Shown: positions 4,384-45,100, counted from the first letter of the stretch. The stretch: DNA of 64,000 nt from Klebsormidium nitens (GCA_000708835.1 DF236997.1:62001-126000); one strand, 5' to 3'. Notes: generated by a model from the sequence alone, not told the origin. Program-made: numbers and translations.

Positions 4384-7300
4384 ATGGCGCCTCCACGAGG
4401 GCGCTTCGCGACTGCTGCAGAGTGTCTTTGCATCATCCTCGTTGTGCAAGCGGGCTTGGCTGCAGCTAAGAAGCGTCCATCATCTCCTGCAACCATCGAA
4501 TATTTGGCGCCAGCAGATACCTCGGTGCACGAAAGAGGGCTTGTGTCAGAGAGGGTTACGTACCGCTCGATCCTTACAGAGCACTCACGGCATTGGAGCA
4601 ACACAAGTGCGAAACACTTCACCCGCGCTGTGCTTGGTTATGTCACACCTTGGTAAGCGATCAGACCTTTGGTCTCCAATGGTGATTTTCTATCTCTTCC
4701 ATCCTTGACTTGCTTGTAGATCTAGTGTCCTGCTTAGGCTATAAAAACTCCGAACACAGTTGCACGAGAACCATCTGATGCAGCCCTCTTGCAATGCAGG
4801 AACTCAAAAGGGTATGACATTGCCACCAAGTTCGCCAGCAAGTTCACCCACATTAGTCCTTGTTGGTACCAAGTCAAAATCGGGTGAGCAAATGCAGTCC
4901 AGGTTTCGATGTTGTTCTGCTGATCTTGCAAAAATCGTGAGTACTTTCCACCCCGGGATGCCGCCGGCAGTGCACTTTGCAGCTGCCCAACCAATCCTCT
5001 GGCTTCCAGGCGTTGTAAGTTGATTGTTTGGCAGCTCAGGGGGTGTGTCTGCTGCTCTGTCCCTCAGGGCCGATGGGTCCACAACTCTACAGGGGGGTCA
5101 CGATGTGGACCAGGGCTGGATCAAAGATGTCCGCAGCAACGGACAGCCCAGCCCCCGGGTGAGCGCCAGTCTTTGACCTCACCAAGACCCGAGCTAAGAG
5201 CTGCCCCTCGCGGACTGAAAGCTATCACCTTTTGCCGTATGCCTGCCAAGGAGTAATATCACTGCAGTCCCAGCGCTTCGAACCACTGATAGTCACCCAT
5301 CTTTGCCTGGTTGCAGATTGTGCCCCGTCTCATCCTGGAGGGCTCTGAAGGAGCCATGGAGGGATATGAAGGAGCAGCGATGCTGGAATTCAAAAACATG
5401 AAGAAAGCAATTGACCTGATTGTCAAAGAGTGCATGTGAGCTTTGTTTTGCTGTTTTGACACACAGGTCCTCACTTGAAAAGGCTGGAAATGTAGGTCCA
5501 GCAACTTTTAGTCTGATGCTTTGCCACCTACCAATGGGGATTTCTCCACGTAACATTATCCATATCGGCAGGTCATCTGACCTAGTATTCACTGTGGCAA
5601 ATCAAGCATCAGATGGCTCCTGAAGTACAAGCTGACAGGGCCAGGTAGGAGGACGGAGTCGTTTCTGTCAGTCAAGTCCGCTTCGGCTCTGAAAGGCCCC
5701 TCCAAATACTCTATGTAAGTCCATTCGATGGATGGTCAGCTTCTAATCGAGCGCCACCGAAAAAATGGCCAAAAAGGTGCGTCAAGCCTAGTTGCCTCGA
5801 GCTCACCGCAACGCTTTCCTCTTCACCTGAACAGAAATCAGAACTTCGATGGTGTCACCCTGGAGGCGTGGATGGGCTGGTCAGTAGCTGGCGTACTCTC
5901 GGATGCGGAGCTGCGGAAAAAAGTAAGCCGTACTCACGATAGCCCACATCCTCGTTACGTAGGCCCTGCGCAGTCGCAGAGTCTGTCTTCTGAAGAGCGT
6001 AGTCGGTGAGATCTGTATTGATGGGCTGGATCCTGGCGGGCCCAAGTCACTCTTAGGGCTGCTGTGTTGCAGGCGCTCATGTTTGCGGGGGCCCTGGGCG
6101 ACACCCTGGCCAAGATCAAGACGAAGGAGGGCAAGCTCATGCAGCTGGTCTTTGTCATCCCGGTAAGGGGCCCGACCGTCACCTGTAGTGCTTCTGATGC
6201 AGCTTTAGAGCATTGACAAGGTCGTGGTGCAGCACGGTCCGACGTTTTCCTATTTGGGCGGCTTCAAACTCAAATTCCAACGTGCTCTCCCGATTTCAAT
6301 GTCGCATCAAGGAAATCGCATCATTCTTCTTTGACCATCACGAGATGTCTTTCATACCGTTGCACCAGCTTGATCTCAGCAACGTACAAAAGCCTCTCTT
6401 TTGACATTCAAGATGGTGGGATCGGCAAAGACAACGGTGTAGCTGCGGAGCAATCTTCACGAGCCTGGAAGCTATGTAGAGGCTTGACACCTTCCTTCGA
6501 GGGTGTCCGTGTGCATGCTTCAAGCTCACCTGTGCTTCCCATCTTTCTGTTTTCTTTCAGCCACCTCCGGTCTTGGACATGCCCACCAAGTTCGGGGCTG
6601 CCGACCTGGCGTTGCTGGCCCCCCACGTGCATTTCTTCTCCCTCATGACCTACGACTTCAGCAACCCGGCCAGGTGAGGTCTTCCTTACCAGCGACTTCG
6701 AGCTGCCTCGAGCATGTTGCTCATCTTCGCATCGCTGGCTGCCAGAGTCCCCAATCCGAAGCTGCACAAAGGCTCAAACATCTGTTCGCTACTGGTTGCC
6801 GCGCTGCTGGTGCCGAGATGACCCGCTGCGACCCTGGTTGCAGGCCTGGCCCCAACGCGCCCCTTCCCTGGGTGTCGCTGTGCCTCAACATCCTCATCGA
6901 CTCGCCCCCGGAGCTCCAGCAAATGGCAAAAGTACGGCCCTCTCTTTGTGCGGCCGTCAGCTTCTCATGAGTCTGCACGCTCCTCTGCATTATCGCACGC
7001 CTTTCCCGTTGCCCCTGCCCACCAGCCTCGCACGAGTACTTGACTCCGCTTCAACTCTTGCGCTGCCCGTTGAATGCAATTCGAACGTTTCAAAAGCGTT
7101 TCACGTTAAAGCTGCTGCGGGTGGCTGCAGAAGCTGCGCAAGGAGGTGCCGCCGCAGCGGCCGTCGCATGAGCGGGAGCTCAAGAGCGTGCTCACCGGGA
7201 ACGAGACCAACCGGGACATCGCGGACCAGGTGCTGGCGGGCATCAACTTCTTCGGCAACGACTTCCAGCTGCCCAGAGGTACGGCCCGCACCCGCGCCGC

Positions 7301-31200: not shown

Positions 31201-32029
31201 CCCTCGACTCGTACTGAAATCGCGACCCTTTGCTGCGTGCAGACGATCGTGTTTGAGCGCGGCGAGCTGGTGTTCGTGTTCAACTTCCACGCGAGCAACA
31301 GCTACGACGGCTACAAGGTCGGCTGCGACGTCCCCGGCAAGTACCGCGTCGTCCTCGACACCGACGACCCAGCCTTCGGGGGGCACGGCAGGGTCAGCGG
31401 CCGCCCCTCGCTCTAGTTGCCAAATTATCTGCTATTGAATAATGACCCTATCTGCCGACTTGGCAGTATTCTTGTCTTCAAGGTTCCGGCCCTCATGCTG
31501 CGCATGCCCAGTGCCTTAGCCTCGACATAGCTACGCGTAACCCATCTGGGCGACCGTCCCCGTTCTGATTTAGAACATTGTTTTGGCTGGCGGCGTGCGC
31601 AGGTGGACCCGTTGGTGGACCACTTCACATCTCCCGAAGGCGAGCCCGGCAAGCCGGAGACCAACTTCAACAACCGGCCCAACTCGTTCCTCACCGGCGC
31701 GCCTCCACGAACAGCCCAGGTGCGCAGCGGACCAAGCCTTGGTGCACACACCTCACCATCTCTCTTCTTGCGTACAGAATTTTTATGTCAGGGAGCTGAC
31801 TCTCCGCTTGCTCTTCCTTGGAATGGGCGCATTGGAACATACAAGATACAGCAGAAGGTGCCTGATGCTCAGTTCCTGGTGTGAAGTAAAATCTTCCGCA
31901 AGCGACACTCACCAGCCGCTCCTTCTCTCTGTCTGAGGCACCGTGTTGCAGCTCTCAAGTCGGCAGGCCGCAACTCTCGTAACGCCTTGTGCTGTGCCAC
32001 AGGTATATGCGCGTGTTCCCGAGCCGTAA
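25277..32029 (+). CDS. SBE1: 1,4-alpha-glucan (starch) branching enzyme, SBEI class (GH13_8), plastid transit peptide
   Basis: [11 protein letters not shown]…[41 protein letters not shown], intact catalytic FRFDGVTSM / AEDVSGM / YAESHDQ, and C-terminal [12 protein letters not shown] typical of SBEI; last exon VYARVPEP*. Confidence 0.95.
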
Positions 32030-33265
32030 CTTCCTCCTGAGGCTCTGAAGCAATGAGGGCCAGCCGCACGCGGCTTCAAAGTAGAGGTCGAGGAGTCAAG
32101 GACAGAACCGTTCTTACGTTGGAACAACAGCAAGCTCGAGCTGGAGCCGAGTGATCACTTTGTAGGACTACAGGCTCTACGAGCTGTCAAGATTGTTTTC
32201 GGTAGATGTCAAAGAGACAAGTAGCGTTTGCCTTTGTCCCCAGCCGCGTGCGTTAAGGTTCCAATTCGACGACATCAAGTCTGCAGGAAATGGGCAGGCT
32301 TACTTATAATCCGAGATGACTGTCCTGGGTTTCACGAGGACCAACCCAACTTCTGAGTTGTTTGCAGGCCATCACAAGACATTGCCAATCAATGCTGGAG
32401 ACGTGCTGCTCATGGCAGCTGCCTGGGCTACTTCACTTGGATCGTCCAAGTTATACACATCATATAGCGGTTATCTGCCCCTGACAATATATCATGGTTA
32501 CCTCATGCTGCGAGCCGACTGGAAGGGACTGGAGTGGCTCTCTACTCCATTTGGTGAACTGATTCGAGAGAACATGTCAGGGCGCCCCCTGGCTGCTGCA
32601 CCCTTTCAAATTTTCTTATTCTTCCGGAGCAGGGTCACTCAATGTTGTGTGGACCTTGCATGGTCTGGCTGCCAGGGCCGCGACCGCCCAACATCGGGTT
32701 CGGACTGAACCTTAGTCCGCCAATTCGAACGTTGACATGGGTTATGCTTAGCTAGCCTGGCGCGTGGCCGCGCCCAGCCTGTAGCATTCACCGCATCCTG
32801 GCATGATGGGTTTCTTTTATTACAGTACGGTAGCTATATGCAGTCGCGATAGAGCTCACATGATGCAGCGGCGCTGCCCAATCTCATGCAGCCTTGGCGG
32901 TGGCCACATGTTGATCGTGTAGCTGCACCGCCAACTAGACGGTCGAGACTCATGGCAATATTAAGTTCAGAGTCTGGTAAACAAATGGATCATCCAGTGC
33001 AGTGTAGGCATGCAGAATATCGCGAAATTCTAAGCATGCGGTAGTATCTGCTTCGCATGTGGCCATCGGTTGCGTGTGGGACGCGCAACCGCACATCTTG
33101 CCTGCGTGTGGGTTTCAGGCTGCATTTCTAACCTAACAAATGATCGCAGCATCATCGCGCAATCAGGCTCACATGCTGCATGCACGCTGCATATGCGAAA
33201 TTACATGAAATTGCATCCTAACAGATTTTACACCGTGCCGGTGTTGATTGAAGAACACAAATGCA

Positions 33266-36200
33266 TTACAATCGACCAATCAAGAATTTAAGAGCCTTCC
33301 AAGTAGCCTCCATGTGAGGCGGCAGAGGGGCCTCGACCCGCGTCCGTTCCTCTGTCCTACTCGTGTGGCCTGTTCTACCTTTGCTTTCCTCGCGTGTGCC
33401 CAGCCAGTGCAGCTTGGGCAGCTCGACCCATCGGCAGTGCAGATGCAAGCGCGGCGAGGCCGAGCCGGCATCGCCCACTGCTTCGCCGGATGTCTTAGCC
33501 GACCGTCCCCTGCCCTTCTTGTCGGCATCTAACACCCCTACGGTGCCGTCCTTTTCCCGCCCTTTTCGAACCTGCCCTACGAAGCCGTACTTATAGTCCC
33601 CAACAATCGGACACGAGAGAACAGAGCTGGCGTGCACCCGTAGCTGGTGCTTGCGTCCGGTAAGGGGCTGCAGCTCGAGCCAGGCGAACCCCTGGGGAGA
33701 GGTGGCCACGGTGCGGTACCGCGTCAGGGCGGGCAGCGCAGCCTCGTCCTGCCTGTCGGCTAGCACCATGCGTTCCCCTCTGGCTCCGGTTACGCACTGC
33801 CGCATGAGAGCAGGTTTCAGATCAGGTAGCTCTCAACCGCGAAACCGAACATTGATATCAAAGCATTGGGCCCATAGAAAGACAAGGAGGACGCAGCAGA
33901 AAATACAAGGCGTTGCACCACAACCACGAGCTTCTTGCAGACAGTAGACTGCAAAGCTTTGACTTCGACAAGTTGTTGAATATCACGAAAACGTTTGTTA
34001 GAACACCTTACTAGCTGCTTGCAACCTGCCAGAACATTAGCCTAATTTTAACGAAATATAGGCGGAGAGGAACGACGAGAGGAGCCTATGCTATAAGGCA
34101 ACCGTAAAGCGCAACCTACCTTCTTGACAGGGGCATCGATAACGCCCTCGGCTTGTGCAGGGATCCCTTCCACCAGGGCCCAGTATGCGCGCTGCAATCC
34201 CGTCCGTTCTGCAGCCTCCCCATCACCGACATCCCTGCTTATGGCACTTGCCGTTTTGTGACGGAACAGTCCTGTGACGGCCACCGCACTCTGCTCTGAG
34301 AGGGCCACGATGAGGCAGCCACTTGTGTCCTTGTCCAGCCGGTGCACCTGCGGAAGCGAAGCGCCGCCCGCCAGGAGTTTGTGTGAAAACGACCGCCTAT
34401 TCTGCTACCAAATCGACTATCCGCCGAAATTCTGTGCCAGCAAACAGAAGGTGAATGTGCGGTGCCCACTGAACAAAACATAGCACTGAAAGCAGGGGTC
34501 GAACACGGCCTCGTTCTACCATACGACCAAGGTCATACTTCGACAGTTAGAAACTGTAAAGAAGCAGTTGGATTGTGCTCTTTCGGCACAAGAAGTATCC
34601 GGAGACTGATCTGCGAGCCCATTCAGGTACCTGGTCCTTGCTTTGGTATCTTACGTACTCGGAAATGGGGTACTGGGGACCTTTCGAGGGACTCAAAACC
34701 AGGGTCGGAGTCGAGACGACGATGTCTTACTTGGGCTCGTACTGGGGAAACGCTTGTCATTTTGAGCATCTGGAACCCTGCCTTTGGCATATGGGTATTT
34801 GCATCTGGTTCACGCAAAGAGCCACCTGGTCAAGGTGCATTCAAATGATTGGGGGTGAGGTAGACGGTTGCTCACTAGCCGTGGCCGCTCTCCATCGCTT
34901 TTTGAGAATGCCTCTTGCAGTAGGTCATCCAGAGACTCTCGGATGTTGCGGCCGCCCTGCAGAGGGAAGATGACCTTGGTCATGTGACATGCCGGACAAG
35001 CGACTCCGAAGCAGAAAGAGTGTCCAATCTCTCTTCAATCTTGGAACCAGTCAAGATGTCAGCATCCAAAGAAGGTGAAGGTACCTTTCTCCCATCTAGG
35101 GCGTCTCACTTCTAGCCTCCAGAGACATTAAGTTTCTGTCCAGTTTACTCTGACAATAAACTAGCCAGCCATGACCCCCAGGGCCCTCACCTGGACCGCC
35201 TGCCCATGCGCTTTGTTGATGACCACCACATGCTCGTCCCGGAACAGCACCCTCTCCCGCAGCTCCTGAACCTCGGGCCGTACCACCGCAGGATCGCCCT
35301 TGGAAGCCGCTACTCTTGTAGTTCCCGACCGCCTGGCTGCCTGTTCAAGGGCCGGCTCTTCTCTTGGGACCTGCCCTGGTTTGGGGGCTGCTCTTGGCTC
35401 CATCGCTCGAGCATGGATCACGAGGACGCTGCCAGGGGGCAGGGCTTCGGCATCTGAGATGCGCCGCAGTGTAGCTGGAGAAACAAAAGGGATAGCCTAG
35501 TCATGCGGCTGAAGGAGGGCCCCAGACAGCATAGTAGCCCGAGTACTGGCACATTGCGTCCCTTGGGGTCTGGGGAAAGCAGGAGTCACATGTTGGTGGT
35601 GGTGCAGCTTGAGCTGAAAGCACTGGCCGGCAGCTGGAGAACGGTTTCGGCAATGTTTTCTCGCGCACCACCACTTTGGAGCAGCTGGTGCCACTTGTCA
35701 TTAGAGCCTGTAATGAGCTGTGTCATCTCCTCCATTGATCGCAGGGGGGGCTTTGTGCACCTCACCTGGTTGATCTGGGCTCTCTGCTGTCTCCACAAGG
35801 CGCACCTCCCGTTTGCGAAACAGCTTGTGAATGACGGCGTGGGGCAGCTGCGGCTGGCACTTGCGCAGCCACTGGAAGGCGCCAGTAGTGCTGGAGGCGC
35901 TGTCTGCATTCGGGCCTGCCTCCCACTCGTCCAGCTTCTGGGGCACAGGGGGCATCCACACCCATTCTCGCGGGTCTCGCAGGAAGCGTCCCGCAGGGGG
36001 GGACTCAAAGCTGATTCCAGATTCAGATTCTGCCTGCGCGTCCAGGTCTTTTGTGTGCTTTGGGCGGACTGATGGGGTCCGATTAAATGCACAATTTCCA
36101 CTATCCCCCGCACCACCACCATCACCACCTTTTGCAGCACCAGTCAAGATCTCGGGCAAATGCGACTTGCTCAGGGGAGAGTAATGCTGGCGGAGAATGT

Positions 36201-36297
36201 GGGCGCCGATTGCCGCTCGGTGTCGCTGAGCGTCACAGGCATGTGATGAGACTGATATCGCGCACTCTTGAAGCAGCCTCGCAAACCTTGCAGCCAT
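33266..36297 (-). CDS. RluA/RluC-family RNA pseudouridine synthase, probably mitochondrial (similar to plant 'RNA pseudouridine synthase 4')
   Basis: Arg/Ala/Ser-rich N-terminus, S4-like AFQWLRKCQPQLPHAVIHKLFRKREVR, VINKAHGQAVQGG, catalytic VHRLDKDTSG, RAYWALVEG, LELQPLTGRKHQLRVH, PIVGDYKYG, LHLHC. Confidence 0.93.
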
Positions 36298-36645
36298 TCC
36301 CTCACATTGCTTGGATTGTGCAACAACCTCAGATGCCTCACCGGTCCTTGTCTATTCCGCGCTCCCAAGCAGCTCTCTATTGTAGAACTTGGACGAAGCC
36401 GGTTTCGAAAAGCGCATGCACCCCGCCTAGCTGGCCTGCCCTGAGGACACTGCAGCCGTCTCCTTGACGCGCGCCGGTACCAGTACGTAGCTAGGCCGGT
36501 CGCGCGGTCCGCCCCGGGGGCAGGCTAGACGCGGCCGGGCCCGCGGCGCTGAGTCCGAACAGGCTTCAAAACTTAGGCGCTGTATCCGGACCTGTCACCA
36601 ACCAAACGATGAGCATCATCGACGGCTTAGGCTTCAAGCAAAAAT

Positions 36646-36653
36646 CCACGTGG
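36646..36653. promoter_or_regulatory. Perfect G-box CCACGTGG in the synthase/ligase bidirectional promoter
   Basis: Sequence match only; the same 8-mer also occurs in exons (37934, 52577, 55735), so it may be chance. Confidence 0.3.
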
Positions 36654-36726
36654 GAGTTCATAAAACCTAGGGGTTGCGTTCCCCCAGGGTTTGGGTCACG
36701 TTCGACGGCTGCCACCTTTGCGCCGT

Positions 36727-36742
36727 GCCGGGGGCCCCCGGC
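36727..36742. repeat. Perfect 16-bp palindrome GCCGGGGGCCCCCGGC
   Basis: Self-complementary sequence read directly. Confidence 0.9.
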
Positions 36743-36907
36743 CTACATTAGTATTCGAGTGCGGGGGAAGTTAGGTATCTTATCCCGAGACCTATCTTGC
36801 TTCCAAGCGGTGTGTCGTCCCCGTTTCGTCACAAAACCAACGTGAATGCCAAGAGCTGAAGGCAGCAACGTAGTGACGTATCTCTGCAAAGGTGTTCTTG
36901 CGCGCGT

Positions 36908-39900
36908 ATGTTTTCTGTGTTGCTGAGGAACTTGAAGATGGCTTGTGTCACCACATCTTCAATACAGCAATCATGCCGGCTGCATTTCACGCCGGCCGGA
37001 CCTCAACGTTGCAATCAGAAGCCGCTCAGCTTGGTGCAATCCAACTTATCTGTTGAAGGCTTCCGCAGGCTGGCTCTTGACTGGCGAGTGTTGAGAACGA
37101 CGGCCAGTAAAGTGGGCAGCCCCAACAGGAAGGAAGACGCTTTGCCTACCAGGGTTCGTTTTGGGGGAAAAACACAAGCGGCTTGTTGCCTCAGAAGTCC
37201 ATTGGCAACCAGGCAAGTGGACGTCTAGCAAGGCCGCATGATTTCCCCCTTCATACCTGTCTTCTTTGCTAGCTGAAGATGCAGGTTTTGTGAGAAGCAA
37301 CTCTAGGATGGGGGCCAACCGGTAACATGGAGGGAATTGGTAAAATCACTCGTCGAACCCCCCAGACTTCTGGGCGAGCACTGCGCCAGCCATGGCAAGT
37401 TTGAATAGGCCCTTTCCTTGCCCTCAGAATTGTGGGACGTTTTGTTCAGTACTCAGGGCCTGTCTAGAATAAAAGCCGTGAGTTGTCGTGCAATTGTCTA
37501 GTTACCGCCGCTTTGAATATTTGTAGCTCGTGACTAAAAAGGACTCGCCCCCTCAACTCGGCCGATTCAGCACGAGTTTTCAAATGCTGACCGTTGATGA
37601 CTTGAAGATTACTGAACAAGCTTCGGCTCCCCCTGCAGCTCAATGGCGGCCGACCTCCACACGCCTCATCTTCCACACGGTGACTCTCTCCGGGCGCCCG
37701 TACATGCGTCTCGTCCGCAATGCACCTCTAGCGCGGCCCCCGCCCCGGCCCCTGTGGACGAGACCGGGCGGCCCCTGATCAAGCTGGAGCAGCTGGTGCG
37801 GGGCCGGTCCTTTGCTGACGTCAGCCGCCTGCTGGAGAGTCCGCCATACGGGTTACGCGTGCGGGAGAGCGTGGCGCTGCCAGAACTGTACAGCGTGTCG
37901 TACGACATGCTCGCCATTATCCGCAAAGAGTCCACGTGGCAGCTGCCCGAGGTGCGGCAGGCGCGGGGGATCATTCTGGAGAAGGAAACCAACAGGTAGG
38001 GCCAACTCTGTCTCACCAAAACCCCTTTCGCTTGCTGCTGGCTAGGCGTTAGAACCGCGGGCCGCTCGAATCAATTATAGGTAAAGCTGAGGAGGTAAGT
38101 GGCACCTCCTTTGAGCACAGAGTCTGGAGAAAGTTGGGTTCACGGCGAAATTCAGTGCACAGACCAAGCACCAGGTTGCTTGTTTGAGCGAAAGGGAATA
38201 TCGAAGACAATGGAGCAGTAGTGCCGCGCATTTATCTTCTTGCTTTCAGCAAAGAGGAGTAGAGTTTTCGGCATACGCCATACTATTGTCTCATAACGAT
38301 GGTTTCCGAGGACGCCTCCGACATCTGTCTGAGGCAGTTCCCTAAGGTCTTCTTTGCAAACCAAACGCCTCATTCCCATGGCGGCTCGGTCTGCGGCAGG
38401 GTGGTGTGCCGGCCGTTTGACAAGTTCTTCAACGCGGGGGAGCCGGACCAGAAGCGAGATCCTCTCGATTGGGCCACGGCGCGCGTCTACGAAAAGCTCG
38501 ACGGCTCTCTCATGAAAGCCTACTTCTACAAGGTGGGGGGAAGCACGTTATTGCTCATGAGACCACACCTCTGGATCAGAACCAGATTATAGACTGGCGT
38601 TCTGCGTGCTTTACAAACATCTTAAATAACGGTGCTCCGAAATCATCCAAAACCTTCATCGACTGTGTCCGCGTACGGTTTCAGAGGGTTGTCCACGGCT
38701 CCCAACGGCGTCTGACAGCGACAGCTTGGCTTGGCAGGGCGCGTGGCGGGTCGCCACCAACCGGACCGTGGACGCCTCGGACGCGAAGATCCACATGGCA
38801 TCTAGCGACCGGACGTTCCGGGACGTGTTTGACGAAACGTGGCCGCAGTTCCCGGCGGGGCTGCACCCCGACTATACTTACATGTTCGAGCTGTAAGGGG
38901 ATTGACCTACCATCTGAAGAAGGCGGCAGTATGCCTTTGAGGAGAAGATGTAGTTGCTGGAACTTTCGTTGAGCTTCGTAGAGTCACGATCCACGTATGT
39001 GATCCGTCCCCGGAATATCCTTTGATGTCACACATTCAAATCAGAGAAGGTAGGGATCCATGGATTGCTTCTTTACTAGCAGGCGTCAGGGGAGCACGTT
39101 CAGTCTCGAAAGAAGTTTGAAACAATTACCATGTGCTTCTCTGTGGAGCTACAGTTTCGGGTTAACGTCTGGGCCTGCTCGTTGCCATAATATCAGTATA
39201 TTTATGCGGGTGCTGACCGGGTTTATATCGCCAGCTTTTCAACCGTTTGACACAACGCTCAACATGAGCATGGGTAGAATCGAAAAGGCTCACCTCTTGA
39301 CTACGAAACGACTTATGATCTGGCGTCCTTTCCTGAACGCTCCTCTTGTTGTTCTTTTTTCGCTGCAGCTGCCATCCTGAGACGCGGGTGGTGGTGCCGC
39401 ACGCGCAGGGCCGGCTGGTGTACCTGGGCGCGCGACACATGCCGACCCACCGGGAGGTCTTCCCCGAGGACCTGCCCGTCCCCGGGCTTGACCTGCCCCA
39501 GCGCTTCGACATCGCGTCCGAGGAGGACTGCCTCGCCTTGGCCGCCAAGCTGCCCTTCTCGGAGGTGCGCGAGTGGCTCAGAGACTGAGCTGCATCTGAA
39601 AGTATACCCTCCCTCTTGAGGAAAGCATAGCAGATGGTTTCTTGAGAAGGTACTCTATGCGAAGCAGAACCTCCGCAGAACCTCAGGTCCGGGCTATAGT
39701 TTATGCAAAGTGCGTGTGCCCAGTACGAAGAAGCCAAATTTTCGCGCGCGATCGCTCTCCACAGAGTTGCTCGACAGCTTGCGCGAATCGCAGGAGGGCT
39801 TCGTGGCGGTAGACTCCATGTTCCGGCGCGCCAAGATCAAGAGCCCCGCCTACCTGTGGCTGGCGCATGCCGGCTCCAACCCGAGCAAGGACCTGCGTAC

Positions 39901-41014
39901 CGTGGTCTTCAACGTCCTCCTACAGGTCAATCTCTGCCACCCAACCTGTGCTTCCTTCTCGGTTGTGGATGCAGTAGACTTTTAAGATCGAATGACGAAG
40001 GACAGCCCTCTTCTGTCAGATTGTTCCGCCCGGCCGTATGTGTATCTCTTGCAAGACCTTTTGAGTTGCTCTGACCGCTCTTTGGCTGCTGCAGGGAGAG
40101 GTCAGCGAGGCGTCCCTTCTGCCCGGGATCGGCCCACTCTTCGAGCCAATGCAAGTCGCTCTCGACCAGCTGCTCGACCACGGTAAGCAGCCAAAGTTCT
40201 TGCTTGATTCAGTTGCTTTCGCACACCCTCACGATGCCACCGTCGTCTCGACTCCTTGAATGTTGAGTTCGCCTGTTTGCGTGCAGGTGCCTTCAGCAGC
40301 TCGGTCGATCTCAGATTCATTCTTTAGCTCTCCTGTTCCAAATGACGTTCTCCTTCCTGTGCCTCATTGCTCATTTGCCGTTTGTAGTGCTGGAGGCCTG
40401 GACGAAGGTGAAGGACATTGAACTGCAAAAAGACTTCGCCTTGACGCTCCAGAAGGACTACCGCCACGTGATGAGCATGTGAGGGGCACACAAAGCCGCG
40501 CGCTTTATTTTGACGACTGCCATCGACCTATTTCTTAATGGTGTCCTCAACTTGCGTTTGATCAGAGCGGCAGGATCTCTCGGACTTTCCTGATTTAACG
40601 GCGATGAAAGCAATAGATCTCGTAGACGCAGCGGACATTTGGAATCGGCATCAGCCAGGTGGGTCATTCTGCCAGGACTGTCGCACTGCAGGCTCCTGCT
40701 TCCGGACGCCTTAAGGACGGCCTTGGTTTGAGCTTCGTAGTCGGACCCTTGCCCGCAGGTTCTTCCACCTCCGGAAAGAAGTGCAGCGCCGCGCCACTGT
40801 GCTTCCACCCAACCCCACCTTAAGTGACGCCGACGTCAAGCAGATGGCTATGGAATATTGGCTGGCGTCCCAAGACGAGGGGGCGGCCGTGAAAGCGGCC
40901 CTGGCCTTCGAGATAGCACTGCCGGAGATCTCGCAAACAATGCTAGATGGGTTTTACGTCCGCCAGGGAGCCGTGCAGGCAGACTTGGACGCCGCCCGTC
41001 TGGAAGAGGAATAA
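36908..41014 (+). CDS. Stand-alone T4 Rnl1-type ATP-dependent RNA ligase (RNA_lig_T4_1-like) with putative transit peptide; 9 exons
   Basis: Exons 36908-37212 (tentative), 37639-37995, 38400-38532, 38738-38892, 39369-39564, 39794-39925, 40095-40182, 40388-40478 and 40759-41014 splice in phase. QARGIILEKETNRVVCRPFDKFFN parallels T4 Rnl1 CRGIMFE…RPMEKFFN; motif I EKLDGS (Lys codon 38494), YMFEL, motif IV EGFV, motif V KIKSP. Confidence 0.88.
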
Positions 41015-42196
41015 TGTTTGATCATCTTTCGCCTGACAAGATGGGTATTACCCTTGACTACTGTAGGGAGCGAGATTTGCTGCCAAGCAACGTGCATGAG
41101 GCGTCAGGGATCGATGGCAGAGTTTTTATGTCCTTCTCGATGCTTGTAGCAAATCATTGTCAGAGCAGCCACGTTGAGGATGGTGTTAACCTGAAGCCCG
41201 GAGGCGCGTGAATCTTCCTTGTTTCTAACCGATATCAACGAGGCATGTCGGCTGCAAGTGATGTCCAATAAGAACTATTGTTTTAAAACTCCTGTAATTC
41301 AAGGCCGGGCAGTGTACCTAGAAATTAGCAATATTGACCTGTATGGATCGGCCGTTTGTGATTGCTGATTGCCAGGCAGACGCGCTTCGGTGAATCGAAG
41401 CTGGTGGACGGCACCTGGGACACATGCACCCTTTGAAACTAGATCCTCAATGGTGCATGCAGGCAGACTGTAATTGCAGTGGCTAGGCGGAAGTGACCGA
41501 ATATGTTTCAATTGCCACGTACACGATCATGCCATCGTACCACATAATCTTGATGATCGACGTGCCAGGGTCGATCAACATATCTTATGTCTCAATCTGT
41601 GCTATACCATTGGCGCAATTGAGTGACGGCTTCCGCAGTCTGCATCGTTGACCAATGGATGAGAACTTGAAGTTTACTACAGCCTAGCCTTGAACACCTG
41701 GTATCGATGCGCGGTTGTTACTTCACAACCAAAACGTACTATACCTATGTAGATGATATTTTTGCAATCACTCGGGTGTGACTGGAATGCAGAACAATGA
41801 TGCTTTTCAATACTTGCAAATCATAGAACCATGTAGCCTCCGCATCTTCGACGCTACAAGTTATATGGTAAGGAATGCTGAAGGTTTTAAGAATGTGGCC
41901 CGGGCGGATATGTTGCAAAGTTTTTGCGTGCCGAAAGAACTGACCATGATCTCTTCGAGTGCATCAAACAGCTGTTGTTAGGGGAGCCTCCACGACTACG
42001 TTCTAGATGCAGAATATTGACATGCAGACCGTGTATCCCTGAAACTTCCAGTAACCTTTGCTTACCAAGCATAAGTCGAACCTGCAGCCTGTAAAGCATA
42101 CCTCCTTGTTTAAACATCATCCCCCTGCACGGCCGTCTGAACCTATGGAGCGACTTTGCGAGCACTACCATAACTAGCTGACAGGTAGCTGATTAT

Positions 42197-45100
42197 CTAA
42201 GAGACGGCGGAGGGTGTGCCCTCAGCCCCGGGCTGGTGCGCCTCACCCGGCGAGCTTTCACGTGGCGGCTCACTCCTTGTGCCGTCCCCGTCATTTCTAT
42301 CACTCTCCTGCGTTTCTAAAGAGCCTGCTTGCTCTTCCAGCTTCTGGATCTTCTCTTTCTTGCTATCCGACGGCCAGGCTTCCTCTGCCGCACCGCCGTC
42401 TCTCCTGGGACTGGCCGCGTTCCCCGTGAGCGTGGGCCCCGGGGTGGACGGCCCCGTGTCGCCCCCACTGTGCGCCTCTCCCGACACAGCCGCGCCGCCC
42501 TGTTTCGGCACCTCGAGCGCAGGGAGCTCCTGCTGCTCGGCCTGCTCGGCTGGCACAGCTGGTGCTGCAACGGGCGGGCCTGCCTGCGCCGCCTCTCCCG
42601 CACCGGGGCTGGGGTGTAGGGCCGGCACGGCGGGCTCCTGGGAAGGGCCTGCTAACACCAGCTGTTCCGGAGGTGCCCACTGCCTGCGCGGCTCGAGCCA
42701 GCCGGCGACTGCCGCCGGCTGCAGGCTCTCCGCGGCCCGGACGCTATGCGGCCGGCTGGCCCCACGTATACTATGATCTGCAGTCGCGGTTTGTCCCGCT
42801 CTGTCGGGGCTGGGCCTGTCCTGATGGAATAGTTGAGGCACGCTTGAGGGCGGCCTCTCTTTGCGGACCTGGCTGGGTCCTGCTGCAGGCGGGGCCGCCG
42901 CTGCCCGCCAGGTGGGGCCGCGACTGCGAACTCGGAGGAGCTCCTCCTGAAACACACCACGGAGAACTGTGAGACCGAGCAATGGCAGAAAGCATCTGGG
43001 CCTACGAGGAGGCTTAGGTATAAGAGATTACTCCAATACTGAGCCGGCACATCTTCGAGGCCCTCTGAGAAATCAGAGCCCTCGGTGTGTCACTGCGGTC
43101 AGTCGGGTACAGGGAACATTCTCGAGGACTTTGATGCAGCAAAGACTTCATTCATTTTCAATCAAGGGGAAGTGAGTTCCAAGGGTCGGAACTGGCAGAT
43201 TCGCTCCAAGTACGTATCCAATTGTCCGACGCAGCAAGTGGGGCTTGTTGAGCTTGGCAAACACAATGGCCTTTCGAAGGCTGGATTCGGCTTGCAAAGT
43301 GCGCGACTGGTTGAAGAAGGCACTCAGCAAGTACGTTGCAACCGGGACATGGGGCGCTAAAAACTGCCAGAGTCCCATCCTGGCAGAGACTACCAACTGC
43401 TACCAATGGCTGGCGAAAAATGGCCAGACGGGCCTGTGCATGCTGACCTGGAGAGCCCTGTTGTCGGCTGCGAGCTGCGCACACTGTTCGCTCAGGCGGA
43501 GAAGCTCTCCGCGCAGAGCCACATTCTCCTTGTTCAAGTGGTCTACGCGCCCGCTCAGCTCCTCGCACTCCGCCTGCACCGCAGAGTCCGCTGAGCACCC
43601 CCATTGATTCCAGGCCTTTCAAAGCAAAACAAGCATGCCTTCGCTGCTTCTGTGCATCATTCTATGGCCCCTTTACTTGCTCTGAAAGGAGGAAGGAACG
43701 CTCTGTGGAAGAAACACGCTGCCAGCCCTTACCTGCTTGCGGAGTCGAGACCGGCGTGCAGATTCTCGGTTGCTTTGCTTCCTCCGCTGCTTTCTCACTT
43801 CCTTATCGTCCTGCAGAACCGACGGGGTTGTTCAGCCAGGCACTAGTGTTCTCGCACAAGGCACGACTCTAGACAGCTAGGCTTGGATATCATGCACAGG
43901 CAGAGTAAGTAAGGCATATCAAGACGCTGCATGCAGTCTTCCATCGAAAAAGCTCTGGCTCTAAGAGTGACCTCCAGCCCTTACCACATCCCCTTTCCCC
44001 TCGCCGCCTCCCGAGTCAGCCCCCTGGCCCATGCGTAACCACATCTCATTTTCGCTTCCTGGATCCCCAGTCTGCAGACCAGGGATCATGGACAAGCCCT
44101 TGACGCTTGCGGTTGGTTTGCTGGGGCCGTTTGCAAAGTCCTGTGAGGATGCGGAGGCGAACGCACCTCTCCCCTGGTAGGGAGGCAGGCCTGTGCCCCG
44201 TGCTGCAATGGCTGTGGAAGCAAAGGGCATAATCTCAATGCAAAGTATCACACAAAGACCTCAATCTGCCACAATTCGCGCAACCGATTTCAGCAAGCTA
44301 ACTTTCAGTTACTCTTCAACAATGTCAACCACACATTAGAACCGAATCCTCATCGTTCGCAATTGTGACCTTTTCGTAAATGCTGACAAGTTTACTTGCA
44401 CTTGCTACAGCAGCACCCTCCCCACGTAGTGCTCACCATCCATGCCCATGTGCTCGTAGCTCCTTTTTCTCAGGATCTGCAGGCCCGGTGCGAGGTCCAT
44501 GTCCACTCGGGCCTTATCATCCTCATGGCTGCTCTCACTGCCCCCGCTGCTGTGGCTCTGCGATTCCCCATTGGACTTAAGCAGGTTGCCCAGGCTGCCC
44601 AGGCTGCCCTGGCCTCGCTGCAGGGCCGTGCCCCCGCTCAGCTGCCCACTCAGCTGCCCGCTCAACTGTCCAGGCAACCACCCCTGCACAACAAGGGGCG
44701 GGATCAGCCAAACCACACATGCGGTCGTGCATAAGATCCTTCAAAGTACACCGAATCAGCCTGGTCTCAGAGCGTCTTCCAGGTATGCCCCCAAAATTGA
44801 AGATGGATGCAGAAGAGTAGGCAAGCGGCTGATGCAAACATCTATGACTGAAGTGTCTTGAAGTAATTTTGCTTTCGAGGTTACAACTTCACGCACTTCG
44901 TCTTTGCCAAAGACGAAAGATTTGCCTACCTTGACACGAGCTATGTTGGGATCAAAGGCCGATGCAGGATTCTGAGTAAAGGGGCCATACCCAGCCTGCA
45001 AAGGACATAAGAGTGTAAGAGCAGCTGTTTGATAATCCGCGCAAGAGCCAAACCAGATGCCGAAACAACCGCTCACTGTTTGCAGCATCAGAGCTCTCTC

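Follow-up and report, generated by a model that had tools for sequence, protein, structure and literature searches.

RNA ligases that act in organelles are known from several lineages. A form of the plant tRNA ligase that resides in chloroplasts circularises Avsunviroidae RNAs (PMC5895719), and plant tRNA-splicing enzymes are reported from several compartments (Englert 2007, cited in PMC3400036). Rnl2-type ligases are used in the mitochondria of kinetoplastids (PMC3400036), and an RtcB-type ligase has been proposed as the joining enzyme of diplonemid mitochondria (PMC12699882). Here, we analysed an RNA ligase gene of the alga Klebsormidium nitens that lies in a window of 64,000 nucleotides (GCA_000708835.1 DF236997.1:62001-126000; all coordinates are positions in this window). 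A preliminary description of this DNA had proposed that a GC-AG intron joins an upstream transit-peptide exon to the ligase, and that import of the enzyme would point to an undescribed organellar RNA end-joining activity. The proposed splicing was found in RNA-derived contigs, and the N-terminal extension that results has the composition of a putative organelle import signal. The statement about an undescribed activity was too strong, since RNA ligases of plastids and mitochondria have already been described or, for diplonemids, proposed in the sources cited above. Novelty would lie in the type of ligase, a stand-alone Rnl1 of viral kinship, if it is imported.

Exon 1 is spliced in frame onto the ligase gene by a GC-AG intron

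The open reading frame from 36908 to 37228 comprises 106 codons and ends with a stop codon at 37226-37228. Its first ATG, at 36908, is in a weak context. A second in-frame ATG, at 36938, has a strong one (AAG ATG G, with A at -3 and G at +4), and ATG 36973 is out of frame. The donor CAG/GCAAGT closes exon 1 at 37212; counted from the first ATG, the exon measures 305 nt and therefore ends in phase 2. The acceptor CCCCCTGCAG closes the intron at 37638. When 37212 and 37639 are joined, AG and C form a Ser codon that is followed by Ser-Met-Ala-Ala in the frame of the ligase. The preliminary description had given the same coordinates for the open reading frame, its second ATG, the phase-2 donor (37212/37213) and the acceptor (37638).

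About 20 small public contig sets contain 35-66% of the sampled words of this locus. Contigs of four runs (X1, X5, X9 and X11), which belong to four studies and two organism labels, were aligned to the region 36000-41500. The runs carry no RNA label, and their RNA origin was read from the spliced contigs: besides intron 1, the same contigs skip seven more introns, all of the GT-AG type, and therefore derive from spliced RNA. As these are contigs and not raw reads, rare isoforms could escape detection. Each of the four runs has a contig with a 426-nt skip that corresponds to intron 1. As aligned, this skip runs from 37209 to 37636 with three ambiguous letters, and it is equivalent to a junction between 37212 and 37639 with GC and AG at the intron borders. 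A GC donor, an AG acceptor and a junction in RNA were thus found together in all four runs, and intron 1 is the only one of the eight introns of the gene to have a GC donor. The RNA junction across 37212-37639 is the one that the preliminary description had named as the check on its proposal, and its presence in contigs of X1, X5, X9 and X11 establishes that the junction is used. These data demonstrate that exon 1 is spliced in frame onto the ligase gene via a GC-AG intron.

The 5' ends of the contigs were found at 36791 (X5), 36796 (X11) and 36842 (X1), and not downstream of 37213, where a transcription start would have spoken against the proposed joining. Since the contigs extend to 36791 and 36796, both upstream ATGs lie within the transcript. 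Depending on the start codon, the encoded protein would have 570 amino acids (aa; ATG 36908), 560 aa (ATG 36938) or 467 aa (ATG 37643). The features of the gene are collected in Table 1.

Low-depth contigs also cross introns 2, 4 and 8 (37996-38426, 38863-39394 and 40451-40788), with a depth of 2-10 compared with 240-560 for the spliced form. They probably represent unspliced precursor or DNA carry-over.

Table 1. Features of the ligase gene in the window, with the evidence for each (UTR, untranslated region).
Feature	Position	Strand	Evidence
5' leader of the ligase mRNA	36791..36907	+	Contig 5' ends
Coding exon 1 (101 codons + 2 nt, phase 2)	36908..37212	+	Sequence, junction contigs, conservation in L001
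Single predicted helix of exon 1 (codons 49-68), cationic and amphipathic, best-conserved block of the exon, FRRLALDWRVLRTTASKV	37052..37111	+	Hydrophobic moment, AlphaFold2, alignment
Intron 1, 426 nt, GC-AG (GCAAGT...CTGCAG)	37213..37638	+	Skipped in all four runs
Exon 2, first part: extension residues 102-147, Pro/Ala/Ser-rich linker, holds ATG 37643	37639..37774	+	Gene model, homologue alignment
Exon 2, remainder: start of the ligase domain	37775..37995	+	Residue 148 opposite residue 1 of homologues
Exon 3, nucleotidyltransferase motif I EKLDGS	38400..38532	+	Junction contigs, Pfam PF09511
Exon 4	38738..38892	+	Junction contigs
Exon 5	39369..39564	+	Junction contigs
Exon 6, EGFVAV and KIKSP motifs	39794..39925	+	Junction contigs; alignment of P0008 with T4 Rnl1
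Exon 7	40095..40182	+	Junction contigs
Exon 8	40388..40478	+	Junction contigs
Exon 9, stop TAA at 41012-41014, 3' UTR to at least 41465	40759..41014	+	Junction contigs

The encoded ligase and its relatives

The joined nine-exon protein was assembled from the window coordinates and aligned locally with the homologues retrieved. Exon 3 matched the Pfam family PF09511 (T4 RNA ligase 1 family) with E=2.9e-5 and 24.5 bits, a score under the 28.3-bit cut-off because the exon encodes only 44 aa. In the local comparison, alignments of about 330 aa with 33-41% identity (lowest E value 3e-69) were obtained between the joined model and proteins that score above the PF09511 cut-off; all four family members scanned exceed this cut-off. 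The family member P0008 matched T4 Rnl1 structures with E=4e-10 and with the catalytic motifs aligned. Through this protein as a proxy, the motifs EKLDGS, EGFVAV and AKIKSP of the algal exons were found to correspond to TKEDGS, EGYVAV and FKIKS of T4 Rnl1. A sequence search of the PDB with exon 2 alone returned noise only.

A representative search with exon 2 gave seven matches and no close full-length orthologue, so that no orthologue of known localisation from a model alga could be used. A word search started from one of these matches retrieved hundreds of proteins of 350-415 aa, mostly metagenomic and one from a chytrid, and the Atlas clusters near the best match consist mainly of tailed phages and giant viruses. 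The same kind of search with exon 2 itself retrieved only fragments of open reading frames on genomic contigs of related algae. The sequence identifies this protein as a stand-alone T4 Rnl1-type RNA ligase, for which a joining activity is predicted. In the 570-aa model, the Rnl1 domain is accompanied only by a helical C-terminal region, and the homologues carry PF09511 alone, which is not the architecture of plant-type RNL/Trl1. A plant-type tRNA ligase identity was rejected, as kinase and phosphodiesterase domains are absent.

Conservation of exon 1 and composition of the N-terminal extension

In order to compare the locus with those of other algae, we used a genomic contig of a relative (L001), whose 12-kb locus is collinear with 31278-43864 of the window, a contig of a third species (L002), which stops within intron 1 so that exon 1 lies outside it, and two contigs of a more distant relative from a JGI metagenome (L003 and L004). 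Exon 1 is kept at L001:5276-5604 with 54-57% aa identity and 75% nt identity; leader and intron 1 are 56-59% identical at the nt level. Both Met codons are conserved, and the helix codons 49-68 form the best-conserved block of the exon. The coding frame of exon 1 (frame 0) contains no stop codon in either species; in the other two frames, three stops each were counted in the window and five and three in L001. The four exon-1 indels between the two species (6, 3, 3 and 12 nt) are all multiples of 3, as are only two of the seven in intron 1 (6, 6, 10, 26, 11, 2 and 5 nt) and none of the three in the leader. As frame 0 is free of stops in both species and the indels of the exon are all in frame, the open frame of exon 1 is, on this comparison, more than chance would give.

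L001 has exactly the same donor, CCAG/GCAAGTGGACGT, with its GC, and the acceptor and phase of intron 1 are conserved in both L001 and L002. An ATG is found four bases past this acceptor in all three species (37643-37645 in the window, at about 6001 in L001 and at about 120 in L002). The GC content at third codon positions (GC3) is 0.57 in exon 1 (0.52 in L001) against 0.72-0.94 in exons 2-9, and the overall GC of exon 1 resembles that of introns. The low GC3 and the conserved ATG just past the acceptor suggest a non-coding origin for exon 1, which would have been taken up in front of an older start codon. The ligase may originally have started at ATG 37643, before it acquired exon 1. The ratio of nonsynonymous to synonymous substitution rates (dN/dS), computed in the correct frame, is 0.66 for exon 1; the pooled value for exons 2-9 is lower, at approximately 0.27.

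In the more distant relative, the exon-2 frame of L004 is open up to a phase-2 acceptor, and tblastn gave no recognisable exon 1 on this contig. In L004:5496-5935, an ATG at 5496 fits with either a CGA/GCAAGT or an AAG/GTAAAA donor. The GC option, which would define a hypothetical exon, has the same donor hexamer and phase 2 as the window. These hypothetical upstream exons were excluded from the evidence, as there are two candidates and no RNA to choose between them. A word search with exon 1 gave no matches, a result that is weakly informative given the length filters and the fact that exon 1 is uncalled as a gene in Logan contigs; the scan of the JGI metagenome with the exon-1 alignment, which gave 84 pattern matches and none confirmed, is likewise weakly informative.

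In the local alignment, more than 20 homologues begin, with their residue 1, opposite residue 148 of the model; the 147 residues before it are therefore an addition. Exon 1 contributes about 102 of them and the beginning of exon 2 about 45. This extension contains 14 Arg, 5 Lys, 5 Asp and 3 Glu (net charge +11), 16 Ser and 11 Thr (27 in all) and 14 Pro, in agreement with the preliminary description of the exon 1 peptide as rich in Ser, Thr and Arg and poor in acidic residues. The net charge is +12 for exon 1, +14 for exon 1 of L001 and -13 for the ligase body. Read from Met11, the N-terminus is uncharged and rich in hydroxylated residues (MACVTTSSIQQS...); read from Met1, it is MFSVLLRNLK. The sole strong amphipathic segment is formed by residues 52-69 (hydrophobic moment 0.46). 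AlphaFold2, run on exon 1 with a two-row alignment of the two species, gave a mean pLDDT of 44, with a single low-confidence helix at 49-68, which overlaps the amphipathic peak, and the rest unstructured. Clusters of Lys and Arg of the classical nuclear-signal type are absent from the extension.

The leader contains an upstream open reading frame (uORF) in a different frame, which runs from ATG 36846 to a stop at 36926 (26 codons); it spans ATG 36908, and 12 nt separate its end from ATG 36938. It is not conserved, its ATG being missing from L001. A 13-mer of the leader, AGTGACGTATCTC (36872-36884), is identical in L001, and the remaining leader is 59% identical; the 13-mer includes a TGACGT half-site and is reminiscent of TGACGTCA.

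Upstream, a neighbouring gene lies head to head with the ligase gene (35586-36441, minus strand). The transcript contig of this neighbour stops at 36441, leaving about 350 bp to the 5' end of the ligase mRNA, and the two genes may share a promoter region. The syntenic counterpart of this neighbour in L001 carries PF00849 (pseudouridine synthase); its first open reading frame in the window (35701-36297, starting MAARFARLL...) gave no Pfam match. Downstream of the ligase gene, an exon encoding a bZIP basic region (PF00170, E=2.9e-6) is found at 43673-43798 on the minus strand. The bZIP neighbour is also present in L001 and L002, so that gene order is conserved across the three algae.

Predicted organelle import and its alternatives

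We propose, with a probability of about 0.55, that the N-terminal extension is an organelle import signal, and a chloroplast transit peptide appears somewhat likelier than a mitochondrial presequence. The extension is absent from the non-organellar homologues and seems specific to this algal lineage; it is net positive, rich in Arg, Ser and Thr and poor in acidic residues. The fast evolution of exon 1 relative to the rest of the gene would be the usual pattern of targeting peptides. In Chlamydomonas, chloroplast targeting is reported to require a cationic amphipathic helix, Arg over Lys and unstructured flanks (PMC10363480), a layout that the extension shares.

The proposed sequence of events is as follows. 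As the transcript contigs show, the ligase mRNA starts near 36791, and the U2-type GC-AG intron 37213-37638 is removed, joining exon 1 to exon 2. Translation would begin at ATG 36938 or ATG 36908, as the first-AUG rule and the strong context at 36938 lead us to infer, and would proceed through the junction to give a protein of 560 or 570 aa. Its N-terminus would consist of an uncharged Ser/Thr-rich start, an Arg-rich amphipathic helix and an unstructured linker rich in Pro, Ala and Ser, and the imported ligase would seal or repair RNA ends within the organelle. In evolution, acquisition of the gene would have come first, and recruitment of exon 1 in front of the older start codon later.

Several observations weigh against import or against a coding role of exon 1. 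With 147 aa, the extension exceeds the usual length of green-algal transit peptides; the helix is predicted with low confidence; and the case for targeting is drawn from composition and architecture. The synonymous excess in exon 1 is not significant by itself (Fisher p=0.17), the GC3 of the exon is like that of non-coding DNA, which leaves some room for it being weakly coding, and no relative beyond L001 had a recognisable exon 1 in the searches made.

The main rival to import is that the extension is translated and stays in the cytosol or nucleus as a disordered basic tail, with a role in RNA binding, in nuclear or nucleolar retention, or in regulation or turnover of the ligase. Disorder and weak constraint (pLDDT 44, dN/dS 0.66) are what such a tail would show, its 147 aa exceed typical green-algal transit peptides, and the RNA ligases of other eukaryotes act on nuclear and cytosolic tRNAs (PMC3400036). 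We nevertheless regard this explanation as somewhat unlikely: the extension is rich in Arg, Ser and Thr, nearly free of acidic residues and without the Lys/Arg clusters of classical nuclear signals, its positive charge is retained in L001 despite sequence drift, and its layout fits the one given for chloroplast peptides in PMC10363480.

Two further explanations invoke a protein that starts at ATG 37643. The preliminary description had credited this codon with a strong context, which was not confirmed, and had suggested that it could give a shorter cytosolic form, which the contigs do not support. The context has T at -3, with only the G at +4 favourable, four AUGs precede the codon in the spliced mRNA, including the strong one at 36938, and no contig has a separate 5' end for a shorter mRNA. 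The 3' part of intron 1 is uncovered by contigs in three of the four runs laid on the locus. The bin depth at this end of the intron equals exactly the share of the first 17-20 bases of exon 2, and a single run of the four has a contig inside the intron, at a depth of 1.6. Nothing in the contigs of the four runs therefore points to a promoter within intron 1. Reinitiation driven by the uORF as a source of the short isoform was rated low, since the AUG of the uORF is missing in L001.

The first of these explanations, which overlaps with import, is that the gene has two products, as for plant tRNA ligase: one long and imported, the other short, cytosolic and initiated at ATG 37643. The exon-1 peptide has in-frame AUGs on either side, of which the downstream one is conserved, and plant tRNA-splicing enzymes offer a precedent (Englert 2007, as listed in PMC3400036); with four AUGs to bypass, a weak -3 context and no alternative 5' end among the contigs, it is nevertheless improbable. 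The second, that exon 1 is mainly 5' UTR and that the functional 467-aa protein arises from ATG 37643 by reinitiation, leaky scanning or an internal promoter, with the long form a minor by-product, would explain the ATG kept 4 nt past the acceptor in three species, the non-coding-like GC3 and a uORF (36846-36926) that stops 12 nt before ATG 36938 and could promote reinitiation downstream, but we judge it still more improbable, because the first in-frame AUGs are conserved, with a strong context at 36938, frame-preserving indels and a stop-free frame in two species imply selection on the frame, the uORF is non-conserved, and the short form has T at -3 and no 5' end among the contigs.

The import reading can be extended to the origin of the gene: a stand-alone ligase derived from a phage or giant virus would have been captured by a green-algal lineage, would have gained introns and a targeting exon, and would now be an enzyme of RNA repair or end-joining in the chloroplast, the mitochondrion or both, whose two conserved starts may sort it between organelles. 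The Met1 start (MFSVLLRNLK...) is basic and may be mitochondrial-looking, and the Met11 start (MACVTTSS...) is uncharged and may be chloroplast-like. Taken as a whole, this scenario is doubtful; if true, it would define a type of organellar RNA ligase undescribed in any plastid-bearing organism. Import itself, if true, would place in an organelle a viral-type RNA-sealing enzyme that is distinct from the three-domain plant tRNA ligase, and would be a clear case of an acquired gene gaining a targeting exon. The firm result is an ordinary one, namely a 5' coding exon and a GC-AG intron, by which the gene model is corrected by about 100 codons.

Compared with known systems, intron 1 resembles other U2-type GC-AG introns in having GC at +1/+2 in an otherwise near-perfect consensus (CAG/GCAAGT) and a pyrimidine-rich AG acceptor. 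All four runs show it to be removed efficiently, and nothing about it is unusual for the class. The extension shares with green-algal transit peptides and presequences, as modelled on Chlamydomonas (PMC10363480), an N-terminal position, richness in Arg, paucity of acidic residues, a predicted amphipathic helix, unstructured flanks and fast evolution; it differs in its length of 147 aa, longer than usual, and is here a candidate predicted from sequence.

The algal protein resembles the chloroplastic tRNA ligase of plants (AtRNL and its eggplant counterpart) in being encoded in the nucleus and in having the Rnl1-like adenylyltransferase domain of a 5'-3' RNA ligase. In the plant enzyme, a transit peptide precedes a second in-frame AUG, and the N-terminus of the algal protein is similar, its targeting being predicted. 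The plant ligase comprises three domains (ligase, kinase and cyclic phosphodiesterase), whereas the algal enzyme has a ligase and a helical C-terminal domain, and its nearest kin are proteins of 350-415 aa that are mostly viral or metagenomic. Plastid location has been demonstrated for the plant enzyme and is proposed for the algal one. With T4 RNA ligase 1 (PDB 2C5U and 5TT6) and the stand-alone Rnl1 proteins of phages and giant viruses, the algal ligase shares PF09511, the KxDG, EGxVxV and KxKS motifs and a similar mature size. Unlike the phage and giant-virus genes, the algal gene is nuclear, has eight spliceosomal introns, is expressed and is syntenic in related algae, and its protein carries a 147-aa N-terminal extension that is absent from the viral and other members of the family.

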